From Klebsormidium nitens (lineage: Eukaryota; Plantae; Klebsormidiophyceae): a stretch of 50,570 bases of DNA. Where the stretch lies: NCBI GenBank assembly GCA_000708835.1, contig DF237568.1, positions 1 through 50,570 on the forward strand. The letters run 5' to 3'. The notes beneath the pieces are model-generated. The model saw only the letters and a list, made by a program, of their open reading frames with translations, did not search any database and was not told the DNA's origin. The translations under genes and the position numbers were made by a program. This document shows, piece by piece, positions 9,688 to 29,700 of the stretch (positions within the stretch are counted from its first letter, which is position 1; each line of letters starts with the position of its first letter).

Positions 9688-11861
9688 TCACTGCCCCTTC
9701 TTACTATGATGCTCCCGGTTCAATTCTGCGACCGGTTCCGTCACCGAGGGCTTGGCCGGCCTGAGTCCTTCCCGGGGGCTTGGCCGGGGGCTTCCGGGGG
9801 CTTCCGGCGCCTTGGCCGGAATCCGGTGGTAATACGCCGCCATTGCCCGGGGGAGGAAGACGCACACCAGGAACCCGAACAGGTTAAAGTGCCAGAACAG
9901 CCAGTTAACCACCGCGAGCGCCTTGCCAAACGAAACCCACAGGTTCATGTCCCGGTTAACCAGCAGGGACCAGATGATAAGCGGACGGCCCAGAACCTCC
10001 GAGGAGATCGGGGGAGCGTCTCGCGTGAGGACACGTGTCACCCAGTGGTACAGCGAGGTGAGGCGCACCGCGTTGTAGAGGATCGGGGTTAGCGCCCTAA
10101 CCGGGAGCGAAACCCCGCGGGAGCCGTGGATAAGATTCTCGGTCAGGATCTGGCACGAGAGCAGGAAGAGGTGGGGGGAGCTCGCGAGCACGCTCTCCGT
10201 GTCGCCGCGCGAGAAGCCGCCCAAGATGTACGCCATAGGCAGGAACTGCACAAGAAAGGGCGACCGCGCACTTAATGGCCAAACAAATGGACCGCTGGCC
10301 CGGACGTTGCCGAAAGAGAGATCGATGGTTGACTTTCGGAGTCGGTAGTCTTTTCTTCCGATTCCTTGTAATCCATTCCAGAAGTACCTTTCGGAAGTTC
10401 GAGCATCAGAAAGTCATCAGTAGGATCGCGTGCCGGTTTTACGGCAACCTGTACCGTGATAGAGAGGAGAGGAAACCACTTTTTCATCCCGTTCGTGGAA
10501 CAGAAGCCCAGTTACACGGCGGTGGGTAGGTTGAATCGACAGGATTCCCTAAAGGGACAGCATCTGTCAAGTTTGGGGCCTTTTACAAAGCGCTTTTCAG
10601 ACAAGGACGAAGAATCCGGCGTTCTAGATTTAACCAGGGCACGGACTTCGTAGCTTACAAGAAGCTGAGAGACAACTTTCTCAACATTCGTGTTCCTGTG
10701 GACATGAACGAACGGGTGCGAGAGGACGGGAAGAGATCAAAACGAAACCAGTCAACTTCAGTCAGACTTCGCGGTAAACAGCACAGAGCAGTTCAGCAGT
10801 TTCTGACAGACACGTATTCGTTCAAGAAAGCGGATGCAAAATCTCCGTTTGCTCGCTGATAGCTCTCAATGACGTGATATGGATACTCGAAGTGCGGCTC
10901 CGACAAGAGGTTGCAATTGAAGCTGAGAATTTCTCATCCATCATCTTCATCGCCGCTCTTTCAAGACCGAAGCGGACACTCAAACTAAAACGGCAAACCC
11001 GACTAGCATAGGCCCAAATGTGGGCTGAAAGTTTGCGATCAATGAGCGTGGCCCAGATGCTGGAGTAACAGGCATTCCATGGAGGTTAATTTTGGAAAAG
11101 GAAGACGTTCTTACAAACCGCAGACACAACTCAGGCTGAAGGGATATCTGCGCGGAATTCATGTGAACGAAAAGTGCTCGACATGTCAAAGGTCGATAAA
11201 ATCCGCAAGTAACCAAAGAATCCTTGCTTCATCCGATATTGACAGCTCAAACAGAGCACTGCTGCCTACTGGGTTGAGTTTACAATTTGCTCTCTCATCC
11301 AATCCTCATTTTGCAAGTTCATAACCATTGCGTCGAATCAGGGTCGCATTCTCCTGCATAATCTGTCACCTACTTACCCTCTTAATGGCCAAGTACACAC
11401 TCTCAATCGCAACGGCATAAGTGTCTTACACGGATATTCAACAGACACCAACCTGAAACCAGCCCAGCTCCAGCTTTTATGCGCGCGCTCACCAGGCCAA
11501 TGAGCGCGCCGGAGAGCACGTAGACCTTGAAGAGGCGGCAGCCCCGGAACAGCCGCGGCGGGGCCTCGCGTGACGTCGGCGGGAAGACGAATCCGTTCAG
11601 GATGGCGATATACGCGGACGCGAAGATGGGGAATACGAGGTCGAAGAAGGGCACGTTCCCGCTGGTTCCCAGCACCACGATGAACGTCACCAGCTGCAGG
11701 TCCACTATCGTCAGCGAGTTGAGCACGTGCGTCAGCAGGCCCTCGGGTGACGTCGCCTCCGCGGGCGGCTCCGCGGCCGCGGGGTCTCGCGGAGTTTTGG
11801 GCCGCGGCCAGGGGTTCTCCGCGTGCGCCACCTGGACGCCGCCCATTGTGGCGCCGGACAT
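9688..11861 (-). CDS. Plant multi-pass membrane protein of unknown function (At5g52420-like), paralog 1; 2 exons, ~308 aa
   Basis: Exons 11861-11493 and 10245-9688 (phase 0). Motifs QLVTFIVVLGTSG, FVFPP, PHLFLLSCQILTE, SLPVRALTPILYNAVRL, LAVVNWLFWHFNLFGFLVCVFLPRA match my recollection of this streptophyte family. Confidence 0.85.
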
Positions 11862-13615
11862 CGCGCGCGCGCGCAGGGGTAGGCGCGTTTTGATTGGGAC
11901 ACGTGGCGGGCGTAGGCTTGTTTGACGTAAGGGGGGCAGGCTTGTTTGCAGCACCCAGAGGAGCCAAAACTTTGAGAAGCAGCTGAATTGAGACAGCTTA
12001 TAGCGGATGGCTTGGGGCTGCTGTCGAAACCCGCCTTGTGCGCTCGACTCTGCCAGGTTGCTCAAAGATAGAAGCTGAAACCAAAAACAAAAGCTCAGAA
12101 TGTCAGCACCTCTTGCAATGCTCGTGCATGACCCAAGCTTCTGCTTCAAATGTCTTCCATTGCGCTTTGCTCCGTTGTAGTCTTGGCCGCCCTTTGAAGG
12201 TACCCCCTTCGCGCATTCAGTGCTGCCATTTACCCTCTGCCATTTCCTCCTGTCCTCTCCTCGTCCTCCCTCTGCTAAAAGTGCAGCTCATTCACGAGAC
12301 CTCAATTCGACTCGAGAGAGAGTGGTGCGAGTCGAAACCAGAGGGAATTAGGTGTCCGCGACGTGATCTTCGCTGGCAATGATTCGATTCGTGTCAGAAG
12401 CTTCTTTCGCCGCATCGCAAGAGTCGAGTACTTTCTCCGACTCGATTGACCGGACAGTGACAATGCAGGCGACATTCCTCCTTTTCGACGATCCAGAGGC
12501 TCCGCACAGCCCTATGTTTAAATCTCTGTAGTAAGCTTCAAATCCACCTCGAAGACAAAGTGTGGAACTGCAGAGTTTGAAATTCGGGAGCTTAGACACG
12601 CTACTGCCGACGACCCTTGAGGGACGCGCATTCTGAAAGGGCGCCGTAGGAGCGCTGTTTTACCTGTGCAACGAACTCCCCACGGTTGCAACCGTCCCAC
12701 CTCTTCTTTACAGCATCTGCCCTGAGAAGCTCGACCTTTCTGCCGTTTGCATGCCCATCTCCAAAGCGCTTCTTGTGCAAGAGCGTTTCTTATTTCAGCC
12801 TTTCTGAGAGGACAAGCACGGGTTGAGCGAAGATGAAGGAAGAGCAGGGCCAGCCGCGCTTTGCATGGATCGACTGGGACTGGGAGTTTGTGGAGGCGTT
12901 CAAGAAGTCCAAGCTGCTGTGAGGCGACCTTCTTCCGCGTTCACAAATCTGTCTCGTAAACTTCAAGTATTGAAATTGAGGAACATTGAGGGTCAGGTTC
13001 CCAGGGTGTTTGAGTCAAAGGCCAGGTGGGCACTTCTGCTCAAGTTTGATGAAAGAATTGCTCTCAGACGCGGTCGGAGTATTCACTTCATCCTCCGATT
13101 GGACTCTGTCCGTTTCTTCACAAGGCTTCTGGGGGACACGAAAAGCGCTAAATGCCGATGCTTCGCCACGTTTCCTTGAAGCTTGATGCATGCTGGGCAG
13201 TTATCCTACATGCAGTAAGTCACAAGATCCTCGCTGATAACTTTGATTTTGAAAACTTGGACGGAGAAATATTCTTTGCGTGAAGTATTTTGATCAATAC
13301 TATGCGTGTAGACGCGTGCTAAAATAACATCAGCCTTAGTTCAACCGTTTGGGCCTCCCGTTCCAAAATTTGGTACGTCCCAAGAATAGAGTCCGTGCTT
13401 TAACTGGAGGCACACAGATGCCACTCTTGTAAATTTTCAATGTCTCCCACTCTTGAAGTCCCTCTTCTGAATGAACAAGCTAGAATAGCTCCCTCAGATC
13501 AACAGACTACGGAAACCAAGCGGCGAAAGTATTCTGCATTCCAGTATCTTCATCGCTGCTCAGAAATTATCTAAGCATATCGTGCGGTCTGTCTAGTCTT
13601 CGTCATTTTTCGAAA

Positions 13616-16760: not shown

Positions 16761-19700
16761 TCACATTGGGGACCGCCGGGGGGGTGCCCCACGAGGCTGC
16801 CATTGTGGCCCGCCATACCCCCTCCGTCCGCCCGCGTTGCTGTGCAACCCCCCCGAATGAGCGTTCCCTGGCTTCTCCCCATCAGCTTCGTAGATGCCCG
16901 GCTTGCGCACGTCCCCCGAGTTCTGGAACCCCCCCCTCCGCGCCGTGCCCCCCTGCGGCCCCCGCTTCTGGTACCCCCCAAAGCCCGCGCTCGGGTCCAT
17001 CTCCTCTCTGGAATCCGCACCCCACCCAGTGGCCTGCATCGGCGGGTCCCGTGCTGACGTGGCATGGAACGCGGGCGTTCGGTCCTGAGGCCCGGGAGTC
17101 CTGCTCAAACCGCCGGGCGCCACGTGTGCATCCTTGCACCGAGTCCCGAACTTGCAGTTCCCCCTCTGGAAGAATCGGCACGGCCGCTGACCCACCCCGC
17201 CTGCAACCGGGCTCCCGCTGCCGTTGCTGGCGTTTGAGTAAGAGTCGCTGCCCCGCTGCCACGTGCGCCCGAAGCCCTCAAACCCTTGGCCCCCCTTGCC
17301 TTGCCGCGGACCCTCGAACTGCTGCTGCCGATTGTACGCGCCATCGTCATGCTGGCCGTTCTGTGGGCCGCCGTTCTCCCCTCCCCACCCCGTCGCCTGC
17401 TTCTGCTGCGCCTCTCCACCTCCCCAGGACGAGTACTCCGACGCAGAGCCCCCCTGCGCACGCCCCTCATGCTCGCCGTAACCGCCGTTGGCCGCCGGGT
17501 TCTGGTAAGCGCCTCCGTCAGCAAATCCGCCGCCGTTGGCGTACCCCCCCGCGCCGCCATACTCACTCGCCGCCCCCCCTACTGGCTGCTGCTCTTCCTC
17601 ACCCCCCCAACCGGTGGGGATCGCAGTCCACCCCTGCTGGCTCTCCTGCGGTGCGTTTTGCCACCCCTCCCCGTCTTGATAGCCATTCCCGTAGCCGCTA
17701 TCCTGCTCTGTACCACCAAACGCCGCAGCCTGAGCGCTGCTCTCGCCGCCCTCTCCCTCCTGGTAATACGCATCTGCCTGCGGTTCCAAATCGCTGCCGA
17801 GGGTCTGTTCGACTGCGTCGTATGCCGCTCCTGGGGGGGGGTACTCGTCCACATTTTCGGCCCCGTTTGCGTCGGCCCGCTCATTGACCCAGTATTCGCT
17901 GTCGCCTTGCCGAATGGGCTGCGTGACCGACGTGTCGGGCGGAGAAGGGGTGTCGCTCGACGGGGTGTACTGGCCCGACGAGTGAAGCCCTGCAAAAGCA
18001 AGCACGAAAAGGTATCAACGGCTTGAAAAACTGGACCCAGAGGGCACGGTTCCAAGGACGTTGGCGTTCGAAACGAAAGCCGGTAAGGTTCAGAGGGCTG
18101 GGGATACTCGCTGATTGTAACGAACGTTTCGTCGGACAATTGAAGGGAACGCCTGCTAAAGGCCGGCTCTGAAGGGCATGTTGATTCTGTACCTGGCTCC
18201 TCCTTTTGATCCTTCTGCATCTTGTTTGACGCCTTCCATTGCAGGCAGCCAAGCGCAATGCGGCACGCAACTATTGCTGGTGAACAGATGGCCAGACTAA
18301 GGCGCCACAACGGCAGCGAATTAGGAAGCAGCAACATTCACAAGGTACGCCAATCTCATCTAAAGAGAACTTCCGATCAAGCGACCACAGACAGAAGCAT
18401 CTCCTCAAAAACCTGAACCAAGCAGCCAATCTCACCTGACGCTTGCCCTGCGCCTGCATATTGCCCCTGCCACCCGTACTGGTGTGCGCCCATCTCCTGC
18501 TGGCCCCCGTACATTTGCTGTGGGGCCCCCTGCTGCCGCGCAAACTGCCCCACGCCCCCCTGCTGCGTGGCAAACTGCCCCACCCCCCCCTGCGGGTACG
18601 TCTGACTGGTCCCCCCAAACCCGCTCGAGAACGGTGGAGGGCCCGCACTGCCCTGGTACCCCGGCTGACTGGCTGGGTACATGGCGGCTGGCTGCTTATA
18701 CCCCTGCGGCGCACTGTTGGATGAGTAGTACCCAGGATAAGCGGTCGGCAGGGGCTGCTGCTGGGGGGGGTATTGAGTCGAAGGGTAGACCTGGGAGGTG
18801 GGGTATAATTGCGGAGGGGGTCCAGCGGACGGGGGGGTCGCCTGGACACGAGAGTCGGAGGCATAGCTGCTCGGGTACCCCCCATAAGCGGACAGCTGGG
18901 GTTGCAAGAAGGGGGGGGGGGCGGGCTGGACTGGTAGCTCCCGGCGCTTTGCCCCGGGTACTGCTGTGGCAGCGAGTAGGCGTCGTGCTGACCGTACTGG
19001 GGGGTTTGACTCTTGGCCGGGTACTCGTGAGTGAACTGAGGGGGGGTGGTGTAAGTTTGGACTGGCGCCGGGGGTTCCTCTTGAGGGGGGGAGGTACGGC
19101 CGAGGCTGAGCTGGCGGATCACCTGCATGGGGTCAATTGGAATGCTCTCCTGACCCCCATGAACGGAGAAAGTGGTTGTGGTTGCGTCACTCGATTCGTG
19201 GCTCTGACCCCACGTCTCCCTAAGGATGTCCGCCTCCGTCCGCATGGCGGGCATGCCGTTGGGTTGTTGGAGACCCGCCGTTTGTTTGAGGGGTTGGTAG
19301 GGGGCGTATCTGGGTGGTGGACGGTGAATTTTCTCAGACGGCACGTGGACGTCGGGAGAACCGTCGCTGGCGGCAGAGACTGCCTCCAGGGGGGACGTGG
19401 GGGAGGCGCGGTGCTCCTGCTCCGCACGGGACTGCACGCACAAAAAGTTAAAGAGTCGATAAGGACTCTGATGGAGCACGATGCAAAGATCAACGGAATT
19501 TTAAAGTCTTCGGAGATTGGGAGGGTCGTGTCAGTACTGATTGAAAAAACAGAAAGCTTTGTGAACTTGAGTTCCCTTAAGGAGAACACGCAAGAACGCC
19601 GTAAACAGATCTCGGGTCAAAAAAATACCGGTACGTTATCCTTCTACCCTGCTCAAATCATGCCCGTTACCATTACGGAATATCACAGCTAACGTTGAGA

Positions 19701-22700
19701 ACTTTATCGTTGTCACGCTACTTCGACGAGCCTGAACCCTTCACCCCAAATCCAAGCACTCCGACCGCAGATAACAATCAAGCTGATTCTCAAATGCTTT
19801 GGAGGGCAGACTAGCAAATAGACCTCGTCGGCTCACCGCAATCTCCGCAAGAATCGAGTTGATGTCGAACTCCGAGCCCGCCTCCTCCTTCTGCTGCGTC
19901 TGCTGTGCCTGCTTCCGCTCCTCTCTTTGCCGCTCCTCCTCTCGCAGCATCTCCGCCTCACGCTCTCTCTCCTCAAACTCCGCGTCATCCACCATGCCCT
20001 CACCCGGCACATCCTCCCACTCCCCGGGGGCCTCGTCCCCAGCCGATCCACCCCCCCACTCCGACGACCCGGCCGCAAATTCGGCCCCCGGCCAGCCCTG
20101 CGCCTCGTCGAGCCCGGCGACCCCTCCACCCCCCCTCCGCCTCCGCCGGGGCGCCTTCTTCCCTCCAGTCCCCGCAAGCTTCGCCTTCTGCAGCAAAGCG
20201 TCCTCCGCGCGCCTGCGGCGCTCCGCCTCGATCCGCTCCGCCTCCTCCTTCTTGCGCTTCTGCTCGTCGGCCTTGCGCCGCTGGTCCTCGTCGAGGCGCC
20301 GTCCCGCCTTTACCCTGTCCTGCTCCATCTTCCACACCGCTTCCACTGCAGGATCCAGCGGCTCGCTCGCCGCGGGCCCATTGTCGGCGCCGTCAAACCC
20401 GGTGGGCTGCTCGACAAACCCGGTCGGTTGTTCGACAAACCCTGTGGGCTGCTCGACAAAAGCTGAAGCAGGCGCATGTGCGCCAAACCCTCGCTGCCCA
20501 AAGCCAGCGGGCTGGGTCTCAGAGGGCGAGTGCAGCGGTTGTGATGGGGAAGAGAACGGTGGTCCCGAGACGCCCAGGTCAGGCTGACGTTGAGTTGACG
20601 GGGAAGGAGGCATGGGGGCTGCCGCAGCTGTCGCCGCTGCTGCCGCTGCGGTTGTTGCGTAAGCAGTTCCATTCGGCCGGGCGAAGGCAGAGCCGGGCGC
20701 CTGACGAGCTCCGACTTGACGCGACTGCAGGACAAGAAATCGCATCAACTGGTGTGACAAGCGTCCACTCGAAGACGGAACTTGTCCACACGCCTTTTTG
20801 TGGAGATAAGAATCATGGAAAACACCATAGAAAAGAGAAACTTGCCAGAGGCCGGACGCAGGTCACCGCAGCACTGCTACACACACGAAATGGGAGGTGA
20901 GCAGAAGCCACTTTCTACGTAAGTACCCTGGAAGACAATTGACAAATTTCAACCTGTGCGACAGAACTCAAACCTGCATGCAACCAATACTCTTTCGCCA
21001 GATCACTACAGGTCCCACGGGAGACCGACCTGACTCCTGTCAATTTGGACCCCACAGAAGAACGCTCCACTCACCGCCGCTCGCTTGGCCTCCTCTTGCT
21101 GCTGCTTGGCCCGCTGCTGCCGCTGGTACGCCTCGATGCGCGCCAGCCGCTCCTCCTCCGCCTGCAGCCGCAGCGCCATCGCGCGGTCCTCGTCCTCGAT
21201 GCGCTTCTTCTCCTCCATCTCCGCCATCATCCGCTCGTATGCCACCTTCTCCGCGCGCTTGCGGGCCGCCTCCTCGCGGCTCTTCTTCTTCCGCGCCTCC
21301 TTCTCCTTTTCTTCCTCCTTCTCTCTTGCAATCTCCTCCGGAGTCTTCTGCTTTACGGGGGCAGTCTCCACCTTCGGCGCAGCTTTGGGCTTCACCTCTG
21401 GGGGCGGGGTCACTACCTTTGCAGCACCGTTGACAGCTGGCGCCACGGGAGTGGGCGCCGCACGGGGCGCTGTGGAGGCTTTTGCGGAGACTCGGGGTAC
21501 TTCGCTCTCCGGCTCCACTTCGTCGCCGTTGGTTTCAGGAGGCAGGTCCCTGGTCTTGACGGCCTTCTTGACTTTGGGCGGCTCAGAGTCGGGCTTGAGG
21601 GCAGCAAACGGGTTGGAGGATGCGGGAGATCCTGACAAGAACACAGACGAATGTCAGCAATCTGAACATGTTCAATCGTCCAGTTGCCGTCACATCTACT
21701 ATAGAGTTCAGATGGGGCGACAAACTTCAGATGGGGCAAAACAGGAGGCTGCAACAATCTCTGCATGCAATTCAAACCAACCAAGAACAGACTCACCAGG
21801 ACGGGTGATGGCCAACAAGCCAGTAATATGCCCACCAGCATCCACGTACAGCAAAACATTCTCTTACGACTTTGGCAGGCAAGGCCCGAAAGGGAACGCA
21901 GACTCCTACGATAACATCAGCCATCTTGCCATCTCGTCAGTGAACCAACTGCTGACTTCAACAGCAAGCCAATCGCCACATAAAGCGAAGGCAACAGCCA
22001 AGCTTACCTTCAGCCTCGTCTTCGTCCCCAGCCTTCCCCAACCCTCGCTTCCGCATCGGCTTCGGCTGCTGCACCTTCTTCTTCTCGCGCCGAGCCGCCG
22101 CTTCTGCCGCCATGGCGTCTGCGTGCGCCTGCGCCGCCGCCTCTGCCTGCTCCTTAGCCTTGGCCTTGTCCCGCCGACTCTGCTCCTCGCGACGCCGCCG
22201 CTCTTGCTCCTCCTGGTGGACAGATGGCGCAAAAAGGTGCTGAGATTCGAGCTTGAGAACAGCCTTTACAGTCTCCTTGAGGAAAAAATGTAGCATCAAA
22301 GGTTGAGGAAAGCGCAGCTTGTAAGACGAAGCAAGCAAAGGAAACAGTGGATTGCCTTTTCTACAACATTCTAATGGAAAGGTCATGGGCAAAGGCGGAA
22401 CAAAGAACCAACGGACACCAACTGAATTCCTTGTACCCAGATCTCGAGAGCTTCCATTTCACCAGAGTCTCTAGGGCATGTCCGTGATCGCCCCATTTGG
22501 TTGACCAAGTGTTAGGAGGAAGCCTGCTCCTCCTGAAACAAGTTTCGACCGTGATGCTCAAAGCTTACACCCCAACCAACATTCGCACCTTCTCCTTTGC
22601 AAGAGCCTCCTCTTTCTCGCGCGCCTCCTGCTCCTCCCGCTCTTTCGCCCCCGCCACTTGGCGCTCCTTCTGCCTAGCCTTCTCCTCCCTCTTCTGCCGC

Positions 22701-24782
22701 TTCAGAGCCTCCGCCGCCTCGTGCTTCGCCTTTATTTCCGCCTTGCGCCGTGCCTCCTGCTCTTCTCTCCTCTTCTGATTAGCCTGCAGAAAGTACGATA
22801 CAAAAGATGGTCACCAAACCGGAAACTAACATGCTGCCATCAGAATCATTTGACCGAACCAGTTTATTCAAGTGATGCCCTCTAGATGCTGAGAAACGTC
22901 AGATAGATAAGCCTGCAAATTCCCCCAGCAACTATCAAAGTATGTCATGACTGCTCGCCAATCATTCCCTGCCTACCTCGTCTTCTCTCTTCTTCCTCTC
23001 AGCAGCCTCCGCCTGTTTGCGCTGTGCCTCCTGCTGCCTCTTCTGAGCCGCCTCCTGCCTCCTCTGCTCCTCCGCCCTCCTCTGCTCCCCTCGGCGGTAC
23101 CGCCAATTCTCATCCTCCTCTTCCGAGTCCGTCTCGTACTCCGAGTCGCTGTCAGACCGGGACATTGTAGGGACGAACACAAATCCTGGGCCTCTCCCCA
23201 TGCCTCCAAAGTGCACATGCGGGCCACCGCCGAAAGAGCTCCTGCCGAAAGAGCCCCCAGCATGCGAGGGGCCGCCGCCACCAAACACCCCGCCCCCAAA
23301 GCCTCCTCCAAAGGGACTGCGACGGGCGGCAGCCTGGCGAGCGAATAATTTTGACAGCCTGTACAGAGACAGAAATGAGTTGTTTTTAAAATCGACGATG
23401 CCTTGACCAAAAACAGTTCTGCTCCATGTTCAGACCTGGCGCCATAAACACTTTCCAACTCTCATGAGTGCTGGAACACGTATGTGACAAGAAGAAGTCC
23501 CCAAACTGCAAAGCGCACTTTTGAGATGTAAGATAACTTTTCCATCACAAGATCCCACTTTTGGAGCGTGCCCCAGGACCTTGAATCAGACCTACTCTGC
23601 AACAATCATGGGAGAGATGCTCACAAGTCCATGAACTGCTCGAACGGCACAATGTCGTCGTCATCATCCCACTCGATCTCGTCCTCGCTGTCAGGCTGCT
23701 GCATGCGCTTGTGTGCCGCATTGATCTCCTTGAACTTCTCCGTAGCCTCCGGTGATTTGTTCTTGTCAGGGTGCCAGACCAGCGCGAGCTTCTTGAAAGC
23801 GGTTCGAATCTGCAACATACAAACTTGTCAAGATTGCCATTCTCTCAGACCTCCCCGGGACAATGCCCTCCATACTATTGACAATTACAAACCACCAAAA
23901 GGAAGATTGTCTTTGTGCCACCTTCAGCAAAAGAAGCTGTCAATCGGCTGCAAAATCACTCTCACAAGCAAGAAAAACCCCACAACCTTTGAAAAGATGA
24001 TCCTCCAACATGCAAGGAAAAGCTGCGGAGCCCCACAACAGATACAATTATAGTCCCGATAAAACACCAAGACAATGAACGATGAACACTGAAAACTCGA
24101 ACGCAACTGTCAGCAAAGAAATGTGGCACTGTTCCAGAATGAAGACTGGCATCGACGCCCAAGCTTAACATGAAAACCACACTCCATAATTTCAGACTGA
24201 ACACAAGGACAAACGAATTTGAAAATCAGAATGGGAACCCTCAAAATCGCCATCTCTGAGTGTGCAAAGTAAAACCCCTAGGTTGTTCGACCCCACTGCT
24301 TGCTTGATTGACTCCAGCAAACCCTAAATTGTGCAGATAACAGGTGATGCTTAGGTTGTGCAAAGAAAATGAATGCTTTCTCACGCTCTAGCTTCGGAAA
24401 GCTGGAAAGATGCGGAGCTCGAATAAAGGGAGGCTCGAAAAGAGCCGACAGGATGCGAAGCTAGCATAGGGGTTGGTAGTGAATGTTCCAAGCCAATCTG
24501 TGGTTACCTGCATTCCTCACCAGAGTTGCTGCAATGAGACTGTCTATTCGTCCCATTCAAATCAGACCAGGCAAATGATAAGATACAGACAAACTGTTGG
24601 TAATCGACCTTCCTCCAGTGGTTGGACGGGCAATGAGATACCGACGCATCAAAATCCCCTTAGCAGGTCATGAGTTCAAAAGCATCAGGAACAACACAGA
24701 ATCAGACCCTCACCTCTGTTTCTTCTGCATCCTCAGACACCCCCAAAACTGCTGCCGCCCTCGTTTTGGTAAGGCCCACCAT
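16761..24782 (-). CDS. Large J-domain (DnaJ) protein with coiled-coil, low-complexity regions and a C-terminal CCCH zinc finger; 9 exons, ~1568 aa if one C is added at the G11 run
   Basis: Exons 24782-24714, 23809-23625, 23358-22977, 22783-22589, 22212-22008, 21631-21075, 20724-19837, 19431-18436, 17989-16761. J-domain VLGVSEDAEETE|IRTAFKKLALVWHPDKNKS has an intact HPD and is followed by a G/F-rich segment. Zinc finger CRFFQRGNCKFGTRCKDAH (C-x7-C-x5-C-x3-H) at 17124-17180. All junctions are phase-compatible except exon 8, which is 1 nt short. Confidence 0.72.
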
Positions 24783-26763: not shown

Positions 26764-29700
26764 TTACGCCATGATCCGCTTTGGCAGCAGCTTTTGCTGC
26801 ACGTCCGCTGACGTGGGCATGTTTGACGCTCCCAGCGTGGCCGCCTCGCGTACTTGGAGACTGACGTCAGCCTGGCCCGCGCGCGACTCGGAATTATAAA
26901 CCTTTTTCCATTGCGCGACGAAGTCTTGGACGGTGGGATGGTCCATGTAAGGCGCAGCAGGGTCGAAGTTCCATGGCTTGGAACCCTGCCACGTGGCAAC
27001 AAGCCCAGAGAGTCAGCAACGCACGGTCGCGAAAATTTGCCTCGAACCGGGGTTGAAAGTTGGTTTACAACGCTCAAAAGGGGCGTATGAACCCAACGGA
27101 AAAAGAGGTCTACCTTTTAGAGTTGTACAAGAAAGACAGTCGGACTAAAAGGGACGTCAAGTTGAACTTGTCCTTTGACGAGCCTCTGATTTAAAGACGA
27201 AGTTATGAAGTCAGTACGAGTTTTCGCCATTTGCATCATTTGAATCGAAAATACGAACAACCAGATATGTTCAATAGACGTCCAAATTCAAGCGAAGGTG
27301 AAAGAAAGACCACGGACTAAGCCTACAGCGGGTTTCAGCGGACCAAGGTTGGACCGGCTCGCAGAATTCCTTAGTGCAGACTCTGACGACCGCCCAGAAG
27401 GCTCACTTTCGAGCGCCCGGGTTACGATAGGAACAAAATAAGACCGATCGATGCCCGTGAGATTATGCAACCTTTTGCAAGCTCATTTTGGACGCGCCCT
27501 CGGAGCTGCGATCCCGTCGCGCAGGCCAGAAGTACTGACAAGCCTTCAACCAGCTTTTCCTGCTATTCATCAGAGCGGAGACAACCCTCAATGAGATTGT
27601 CCATGCACCAATGAAAACGCGAAGAAGGCGACTTTCAGTTTGAAGGAGGAAAACTCGATGGCAGAAATTAGACGTGAGGAATTAACAAAAACTAGACGTG
27701 AGAAATTAAGATTACAGTGTGACTTTCTTAACACGCTCTCGTATTTCCCGTTTCTGTTTTTCAAGTGTCTCGCCCAGAATCTGCATTCTGTCATCTTCCT
27801 TTCAATGCCATGCACACAGCATGATTGCACAACAATCCAAATCTAGAAGGTCTCATTTCTTGTCCCCACCTTGGCGCAGTAGTGCACGTTCTTGACCTTC
27901 TTGACGTCGACGTTTTCCGGATGTTGCCAGAGCATGGCCAGCACCAGGTTGTAGCAGCTCGGGATCGGTCGGTAAACGGCCTCGAAGTAGCGGTTCAGAA
28001 AGTCCTGCTCTGCGAATGGCGTCGCGGGCCACTCCTCCATCTTCTGCAGCATGTCCCTGCAAGATGACGTCAGCAGAACGTCAGCGGAGGGATGAGCAAT
28101 TGAGAAGCCCTGTGACCTTCAACATGAGAGCGTCGAAAGGTGAGGAGCTCTAAGTGGAGTATCGACACGGTCTGGGGACGTAAGGCAGTCGCAAGAAAAT
28201 TTCATGGGTGCATGTTGCGATTGCACTCGCAGAAAGTGGTAAAGCAAACGAAGAACGATCCAGGGTGCCCTCGGAAGCGACACGTGTCACATGCTGGACC
28301 CAGTACAACTCTGTTCTCGCTATAGTTGCCCTACGACGTGCATTTCGGACACAGGCACAGCAGAAGGCTCACGTGCGGATCCTTCAACGGCAACAAACTC
28401 TGACAAAGTTGCTCAGAAGGAAAAAGAGATCAGGCCTGACGGCTCAACTTGAAGATGGTGGAGCTGGGCTCGAAGACAAACATGCCGGCGTTGAAGTAGG
28501 GGGCGGGCTTAGGCGCGTCTGCGGTCCAGGGCACCTTGTGTGGGGCCTGCTGGCAGTAGCCCAGCTGGTACTGCACTGTGTAGCTCCACGTGCCTGCGCC
28601 GTGCAGGATGACGTCAGCAACCGACTGATTTGGAATGGAGTATTCTGGACCAAATCCTTGCGGCAGGAAGATGTCAAAGGTCTCTACTTGATGGACAACT
28701 GTAAGGTCGGTACAAGCAGCTCTCAGATTCCAGATGAAAGGTTGTCCAATTGGCAGATGAACATCTTCGCAGTCCCAGGCAAGTCGAACGCGGAGAAAGG
28801 GTACAGTGGTAGACTCAGGTTGTGGGTACAGTAGCATCTGACCTCAAGACCGGAAAGCAAGCCCAGCGTCGAAGCCTGGAAAACCCGCTTTTCTGAATTT
28901 TGGAGTAGTTTTATGACTGGGAAGTAAAATCTTGCTTTTCGAAATAGGTTTTCTGACAAGTTAATCGTCCGCTCAACCTCACAGAAACAGTCCATGACGG
29001 CGCTCAAGGTCCCAGGGGGCCTGTCAAAGAGCTCGTCGATATTCTGGAAAAGGAGCATGTCGGCGTCCAGGTAGATCAGCTTGTCGTACTCCTCAAACTG
29101 CACACGTACACAAAGAAGGACCTGGGCCTCAGTGGCGTGTTGACCGCATTGCAAAAGTTTTTCGGTGTAAGTACTGGCGCCTCTGAAACCAAGACTAGTC
29201 TGAGCTGTTGATCTTTATTCATGTGTATTTAAGGCCCACCAGTCTTTTAGCCAGCCATCTATAACGCTTCAGGATCATATGCATGAAATCCACAAGCCTG
29301 CACACTCTAAAAGGTGCAACAGAGCATGGGGTTCAACTGCCTAATTTCAATACCTTAAACGGGAAATAGCTCCACACATCAAGACCTGTCAATCTGGGAA
29401 ACCCTTTATGCTTCAACCTCCCACTTAGAAATGTTACAGTGCAGATCCCACAAGAGAACCCCTGCCTCCTTTCATATTGCTTTCTTCCTAACCTGCCCTG
29501 CTTGCCAGAACAAAGCACCGAGTCAAGATATATCTTCAGAGTGATCTGTGATCCTGCAATTAAGCGCACACCCATCGAAACCAACACTATGAAAACACAC
29601 ATGACATATTGCAAAGTACGGGCCCCGAGGCAGAAAACCAATGCAAGTTTTAGAGACAAGCCCACGACCATAAGAGAAAAGCTGACATCACCTCTCATCC

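Follow-up and report, generated by a model that had tools for sequence, protein, structure and literature searches.

A transcribed nine-exon gene of Klebsormidium nitens encodes a very long J-domain protein with low-complexity tracts and a CCCH finger, a candidate Hsp70 recruiter for RNA-protein assemblies

J-domain proteins fused to RNA-binding modules

J-domain proteins decide where heat shock protein 70 (Hsp70) works, and their HPD loop docks the ATP-bound chaperone and triggers ATP hydrolysis, a property of the family as a whole. How chaperones are directed to RNA-protein condensates is under active study; the condensate-targeting examples known so far are mostly general-purpose J-proteins. 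The subject of this report is a gene of the alga Klebsormidium nitens, located on contig DF237568.1 (assembly GCA_000708835.1) in a stretch of 50,570 nucleotides, hereafter the window, to which all positions refer. Its product joins an N-terminal J-domain to a long charged region, Tyr/Gln- and Gly/Trp-rich low-complexity tracts and one CCCH finger. A sequence-only reading of the window had proposed that it is dedicated to RNA condensates, for example stress granules, either as a scaffold or as a recruiter of Hsp70, and had put it forward as a candidate for an undescribed system.

Proteins combining a J-domain with an RNA-binding module have been described in several lineages. In Trypanosoma cruzi, TcZC3HTTP is a CCCH and DnaJ RNA-binding protein that is reported to associate with mRNAs and RNA-binding proteins, with partners that shift under nutritional stress, and it is described as exclusive to trypanosomatids (10.1101/2023.07.17.549355); the same domain pair has been noted in these organisms elsewhere (PMC2873481). 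It has in common with the K. nitens protein one C3H finger and a J-domain in one polypeptide, but it comes from an unrelated lineage, and its published description mentions neither a Gly/Phe-rich (G/F) tract nor a giant charged helix, and no prion-like or GW tracts. The shared layout, compared by published domain description only, is most likely convergent. The spliceosome-associated proteins DNAJC17 and Cwc23/Cwf23 carry a J-domain together with an RNA recognition motif (RRM), the J-domain activating Hsp70 in RNA processing (PMC13388955; 10.1101/2024.06.27.600868). As in the K. nitens protein, their J-domain is N-terminal and precedes a charged helical region and one RNA-binding module, although this module is an RRM in their case and a CCCH finger here, where no RRM match was found in any exon. 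Members of this group are ca. 300 residues in length and are not known to have a G/F tract or long disordered regions.

Two further groups are comparable in part. DNAJB2, DNAJB6 and DNAJB8 also possess a J-domain at the extreme N-terminus directly followed by a G/F tract, and they too lack the beta-sandwich client-binding domains of the canonical forms. The K. nitens protein is 5-6x longer, and its putative ER/K helix, CCCH finger, and GW and RG tracts set it apart. GW182/TNRC6 and the plant GW/WG Ago-hook proteins share with it conserved Trp residues beside Gly in a fast-evolving disordered region; motif density is, however, far lower here and there is no homology. No GW182/TNRC6-type or plant Ago-hook protein is known to carry a J-domain. 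No plant or algal protein with a J-domain/CCCH layout of this kind was found in the literature, and no member of the Arabidopsis CCCH or J-protein families is known to have this layout.

Gene structure and transcription

Six-frame reading of the window reveals long open segments chained along the minus strand from 24782 down to 16764. Enumeration of splice sites, keeping the frame open, yielded one best GT..AG intron per gap and led to a model of nine exons forming a single open reading frame (ORF) of 1567 codons, or 4701 nt when an extra base at 18910, discussed below, is included. No exon piece is interrupted by a stop codon, and over the 4701 nt the phases return to 0. Contigs from four public runs, each of a different study, were mapped onto positions 17900-23899, and the spliced contigs of these runs contain seven exon joints (23624/23357, 22976/22782, 22588/22211, 22007/21630, 21075/20724, 19837/19431 and 18435/17988) exactly where splice enumeration had put them, all seven being CT..AC on the plus strand and hence GT..AG on the minus strand. 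The remaining joint, between exons 1 and 2, is represented by a loose end of an RNA contig at 23811 whose letters equal the 3' end of exon 1, and the exon 1 donor (GAG/GTGAGG) is the top-scoring junction in the enumeration. A single RNA contig of 3959 nt extends from 18584 through to exon 1.

Contigs are absent from the introns or reach only a few percent of the depth seen on exons, and the runs therefore behave as RNA. The low-depth contigs (3-4 vs 68-190 on exons) lie in introns 7, 6 and 2, at 19508-19818, 20810-20986 and 23334-23541 respectively, and would fit either precursor RNA that is still unspliced or traces of DNA. The best runs hold a fraction of 0.59 of the words sampled over the 8022-nt span; as this matches the proportion of the span taken up by exons (4704 nt of 8022), the last exon is present in RNA too. 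Each of the four runs also has contigs that share, near 21150-21152, only a short Glu/Lys-coding stretch of exon 6 and then diverge into unrelated sequence, and these are probably other transcripts with a common charged-repeat coding stretch. The locus is thus a single, real, transcribed nine-exon gene for a protein of 1567 residues. This bears out the phase-compatible exon chain of the sequence-only reading, which had named transcripts of two separate genes as the finding that would count against it; the joint between exons 8 and 9 is instead seen in four runs, with compatible phases.

Exon 8 requires separate comment, since the genome switches frame within it, yet the RNA contigs have no joint there. 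RNA contigs of three studies (X1, X5 and X7) contain an extra G behind plus-strand position 18910, and in two relatives (L001 and L002, described below) exon 8 is one open frame across this site. Because these RNA contigs and relatives are in frame, a base is most likely missing from the reference, in the run of C at 18910/18911. An intron inside exon 8 as the cause of the frame change is ruled out, there being no joint in the RNA contigs, and the earlier description of this region is corrected accordingly to one exon, 19431-18436, with a 1-nt assembly deficit. As assembled, the old frame past 18910 stays open to 18274, and gene models built from the assembly could cut the protein short or omit the exon bearing the CCCH finger. 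Further along the exon, the RNA contigs are interrupted at ~18560-18590 in each of the four runs. The break coincides with a perfect-register 30-nt tandem duplication (18530-18589) and is a normal assembly break at a repeat. The relative L002 has a single copy-like stretch in the place of this duplication.

Domains and conservation of the protein

A Pfam scan of the open segments returned two significant domains, DnaJ and zf-CCCH. The DnaJ match covers the exon 2 segment (23827-23624; E=3.8e-13, 49.8 bits, cut-off 27.8) and confirms a J-domain with its HPD intact, as had been read from the letters. The domain starts at about residue 5, with exon 1, ~900 nt upstream of the remainder, contributing helix I ('AVLGV...'); residues 1-84 comprise the J-domain and the acidic run after it. 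Its closest solved counterparts are DnaJ2, Ydj1, DNAJB9, DNAJC5 and DNAJB1 (PDB matches at 1e-9), and the sequence is close to the DNAJB and DNAJC5 types. The acidic linker and G/F-rich tract described earlier are likewise present, exon 3 being composed of 17% Gly, 13% Arg, 12% Glu and 7% Phe, with 8 FG/GF dipeptides. An N-terminal J-domain directly before a Gly/Phe-rich region agrees with class B in its original definition, as does the lack of a Pfam DnaJ_CXXCXGXG match in any exon. The canonical class A and B forms do not apply, as none of the exons matches DnaJ_C at E≤1 and the modelled regions are helices or disorder. Judged by these domain signatures, the protein is a non-canonical class-B-like J-domain protein.

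From the end of exon 3 through exon 5 run ~180 consecutive residues dominated by Glu, Lys, Arg, Ala and Gln, of which only 5-7% are hydrophobic (5% in the charged segment of exon 3) and among which opposite charges at i/i+4 are many. Exon 4 is composed of 26% Glu, 20% Ala, 18% Lys and 15% Arg, is 6% hydrophobic, and has 16 such opposite-charge pairs. By composition these residues look like an ER/K-type single alpha-helix, which would measure ~25 nm if fully helical (1.5 Å per residue). A classic heptad coiled coil was rejected for exons 3-5, hydrophobic residues being too few, and the several hundred residues of coiled coil in the sequence-only reading are to be revised for the first ~180. Exons 6 and 7 encode more charged helices, with more hydrophobic positions; in exon 7, AlphaFold2 places helices at 125-185 (predicted local distance difference test, pLDDT, >90) and at 247-284, the remainder scoring below 50.

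The middle region also holds several short motifs. Two basic clusters resembling nuclear localisation signals (NLS), one each in exons 5 and 7, are conserved in relatives. The 'VEQPTGF' unit of exon 7 (~20370-20460) occurs in three copies here and in five in the relative P0152, its copy number varying among relatives. In the GEWEDVP motif the residues E-W-E-D-V-P are invariant in four relatives, and the W-x-x-V core with acidic flanks fits an Atg8-interacting motif (AIM/LIR), a possible pointer to selective autophagy. A stretch of exon 6 resembling a ubiquitin-interacting motif ('EDEDRAMALRLQAEEE') was dropped, having no Pfam support even at E≤10.

The low-complexity tracts rich in Pro/Gln/Tyr/Gly and Gly/Trp/Gln that had been reported are present, by composition, in exons 8 and 9. 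The exon 8 tract (18% Gln, 16% Gly, 15% Pro, 11% Ser, 11% Ala, 10% Tyr) has 16 spaced Tyr in 158 residues and corresponds to prion-like, FUS-like sequence, i.e., a polar Gly/Gln/Ser-rich disordered tract with regularly spaced aromatics. Exon 9 is predicted to be disordered throughout (AlphaFold2 mean pLDDT 37; no fold found). Within it the single finger of the earlier description, C-x7-C-x5-C-x3-H, scores 24.9 bits with PF00642 (zf-CCCH; cut-off 20.5), and its Cys/His ligands, together with all 9 Trp of the exon, are invariant in both relatives that cover it. A tandem CCCH arrangement of the TTP/TZF kind was not found, the Pfam scan of all exons giving one finger only in the whole protein. The RG-rich end is present too, although of its six RG dipeptides only one is a true RGG, which narrows the RG/RGG tail that had been claimed. 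Across exons 7-9, 15/15 Trp are conserved in a relative of 53-62% identity, and 10 Trp adjoin Gly where 4.7 are expected (p about 0.005). Conserved SP/TP clusters are also present in the protein.

For relatives, the exons were searched one by one, with one protein search limited to lengths up to ~710 residues and an exhaustive search of representatives without length limit. Among 5.8 billion proteins the last exon has two relatives only, P0001 and P0002. The former, 84% identical, lies on a Logan genomic contig (L001) carrying exons 8-9, and the latter, 53% identical over the last exon, on a 24-kb JGI metagenome contig (L002). All nine exons are found on L002 in the same order and on one strand, at 53-88% identity per exon, with the same start (MVGLTK), GT/AG sites at the same codon positions in all introns, and the DnaJ ORF ~7.6 kb upstream of the finger exon. 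A third source, L083/L084, carries exons 1-7, and a fourth, L085, carries exon 7; the exon 7 search gave three Klebsormidium-like ORFs, and that with exon 6 gave no relatives. The ratio of non-synonymous to synonymous substitution rates (dN/dS) was computed per exon, with exon 3 saturated. It ranges from 0.05 to 0.10 in the exons of the J-domain and putative ER/K helix and from 0.15 to 0.27 in those of low complexity, with the finger exon in the latter range against both relatives. Values of 0.15-0.27 in the low-complexity exons indicate that the disordered parts are coding and constrained, and the whole gene is under purifying selection.

Beyond these, a profile of the last exon gave one strong match (P0002) among 1.84 billion cluster representatives, the other 231 matches aligning to the ~30-residue finger alone. 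A motif scan of 150 listed finger-profile matches found no J-domain HPD context, and the 7 top matches read among these are proteins with repeated CCCH fingers; no long protein with a tail of the exon 9 type was present in the exhaustive search of representatives. Of two metagenome scans the first returned nothing and the second 80 loci matching the J-domain only, and the ESM Atlas gave only weak CCCH clusters (scores ≤0.78). As far as the databases searched reach, the gene is restricted to Klebsormidium-like algae, with only generic J-domain or CCCH matches elsewhere. The well-characterised ortholog of the same architecture, which the sequence-only reading had named as a finding that would speak against it, did not appear in the exon-wise searches. 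Coordinates of the features are collected in Table 1.

Table 1. Exons and features of the J-domain/CCCH gene, in positions of the window
Feature	Position	Strand	Description
Exon 1	24714..24782	-	Start codon 24782-24780 and codons 1-23; helix I of the J-domain 'AVLGVSEDAEETE'; 78% identity to L002 and L083
Exon 2	23625..23809	-	J-domain helices II-III, HPD 23773-23765, then acidic linker 23695-23654; Pfam DnaJ
Exon 3	22977..23358	-	G/F-rich tract ~23321-23172, acidic Ser/Asp/Glu patch, start of putative ER/K helix 23141-22977
Exon 4	22589..22783	-	Putative ER/K charged helix; 86% identical in L002, dN/dS 0.08
Exon 5	22008..22212	-	Putative ER/K helix, then conserved basic NLS-like cluster 22092-22042; 88% identical in L002
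Exon 6	21075..21631	-	Pro/Ala/Lys-rich linker, then charged helix; 73% identical in L002
Exon 7	19837..20724	-	Ala-rich and EQPTGF-repeat disordered part, then two long helices
Exon 7 motifs	20160-20125; 20025-20005	-	NLS-like KKAPRRRRR; conserved Trp motifs including GEWEDVP; alignment of four relatives
Exon 8 (one exon)	18436..19431	-	Conserved Ser/Pro-rich part, then Tyr/Gln/Pro/Gly prion-like tract 18910-18437
1-nt difference between genome and RNA	18910..18911	-	11-C run, minus strand; assembly frameshifted here
Tandem 30-nt duplication	18530..18589	-	Two GGVGQFA[T/R]QQ units; RNA contigs end at 18583-18594
Exon 9 (last)	16764..17989	-	Stop 16766-16764; Gly/Trp/Gln-rich disordered tail, 6 GW/WG motifs ~17690-17013
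Exon 9 finger and end	17180-17124; 16970-16767	-	CCCH finger (Pfam zf-CCCH); RG-rich end (composition)

Two neighbouring features were recorded on the minus strand of the window. Exon-like ORFs of a GT8 glycosyltransferase lie at 28430-29154 (Pfam E=1.2e-5), and L002 carries a GT8 fragment on the opposite side of the J-protein gene relative to K. nitens. A DUF7733 ORF (11403-12149; Pfam E=7.7e-18) lies past the 3' end of the J-protein gene, ~4.6 kb away.

Proposed function and alternative readings

In general terms, it is somewhat probable that the protein acts as an Hsp70 recruiter in RNA-protein assemblies. As in the J-domain family at large, the N-terminal domain would recruit Hsp70 and stimulate its ATPase through the HPD, a step which the G/F tract probably tunes, as in class B J-proteins. 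The ER/K helix, judging from the anatomy of the protein, would serve as a long, stiff spacer holding the J-domain away from the tail. The C-terminal ~740 residues, predicted to be disordered and multivalent through their spaced Tyr, Gly-Trp motifs, CCCH finger and RG dipeptides, would probably bind RNA and partition into RNA-protein assemblies, where Hsp70 would be loaded onto neighbours and the assemblies kept dynamic or dismantled. The stress granule is a plausible candidate for the assembly served, the P-body or a nuclear body being others.

Several observations weigh against this proposal. Helix IV of the J-domain is atypical, with the KRxxYD motif missing. A lone CCCH finger binds RNA weakly by itself, and such fingers can also contact proteins. 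The two conserved basic clusters point to the nucleus, a poor fit with stress granules. Over a few dozen bases at 18530-18589, continuity of the transcript is inferred from the evenness of depth, from the frame being open and from the orthologs. Finally, the length-limited one of the exon-wise searches could have missed full-length orthologs of at least 900 residues.

A nuclear RNA-processing role, in which the protein would be a functional analogue of DNAJC17 and Cwc23/Cwf23 at the spliceosome or nuclear speckles with the CCCH finger replacing the RRM, agrees with the order of N-terminal J-domain, charged helix and RNA-binding module common to DNAJC17 and Cwf23 (PMC13388955; 10.1101/2024.06.27.600868). 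The two conserved NLS-like clusters fit it equally well, and the conserved SP/TP clusters also speak for it. Single CCCH fingers are, moreover, frequent in splicing factors. However, Pfam finds no RRM or other splicing-factor domain in any exon, and the Tyr-rich prion-like and GW-rich tracts are foreign to DNAJC17; a role of this kind seems rather unlikely. Improbable, too, is a GW182-like adaptor with its own J-domain, linking Hsp70 to Argonaute or the CCR4-NOT deadenylase on target RNAs. The complete conservation of Trp in exons 7-9, their excess beside Gly, their Gly/Ser/Thr/Glu/Gln contexts and the predicted disorder would all suit such an adaptor, and Hsp70 and J-proteins act in Argonaute loading (PMC5084781), a J-protein binding a specific Argonaute in C. 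elegans (PMC11194074). Yet ten motifs in ~1000 residues are sparse in comparison with known Ago hooks, Trp is slow-evolving in general, and the last-exon profile search gave no homology to any GW protein. If the GW motifs did dock Argonaute or CCR4-NOT, chaperone-driven loading or remodelling of silencing complexes would be tied to target RNAs in an early-diverging streptophyte.

There is a slim chance that the protein is an anti-aggregation chaperone of the DNAJB6 kind, its tail, rich in Tyr, Gln and Gly, recognising aromatic or Gln-rich clients instead of RNA and its finger being minor or protein-binding. The J-domain and G/F tract without canonical C-terminal client-binding domains are those of a non-canonical class B protein, but the finger ligands and flanks are invariant and adjoin RG dipeptides, which points to nucleic-acid binding, and no S/T-rich region of the DNAJB6 type was found. 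The assembly frameshift in exon 8 and the break of RNA contigs of four runs at 18560-18590 could, in turn, betray two neighbouring genes, one for a J-protein and one for a CCCH protein, mistakenly merged in the model, or else a pseudogene disrupted at 18910. The frame-restoring base in RNA contigs of three studies and the single open exon 8 of the relatives speak against both, as do dN/dS values of 0.17-0.27 on either side of the break. A wrong joining is further contradicted by the phase-compatible joint of exons 8 and 9 in four runs, by the tandem repeat that coincides with the contig break, and by the J and CCCH exons remaining linked on L002. This explanation is largely refuted and very improbable.

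Returning to the proposed Hsp70 recruiter, the structural part of the sequence-only reading holds, all modules lying on one spliced transcript and in a conserved frame, whereas its suggestion of an undescribed system meets precedents, fusion of a J-domain to an RNA-binding module being known already from DNAJC17, Cwf23 and TcZC3HTTP. What is new is the combination, in which a class-B-like head is joined to a very long putative ER/K helix, prion-like and GW-rich tracts, a single finger and an RG tail; the size of the protein and its restriction to Klebsormidium-like algae within the databases searched add to this. With a J-domain, condensate-type sequence and an RNA finger built into one product, the gene would offer a natural model for targeted Hsp70 recruitment, in a stress-tolerant terrestrial alga close to the base of the land-plant lineage.

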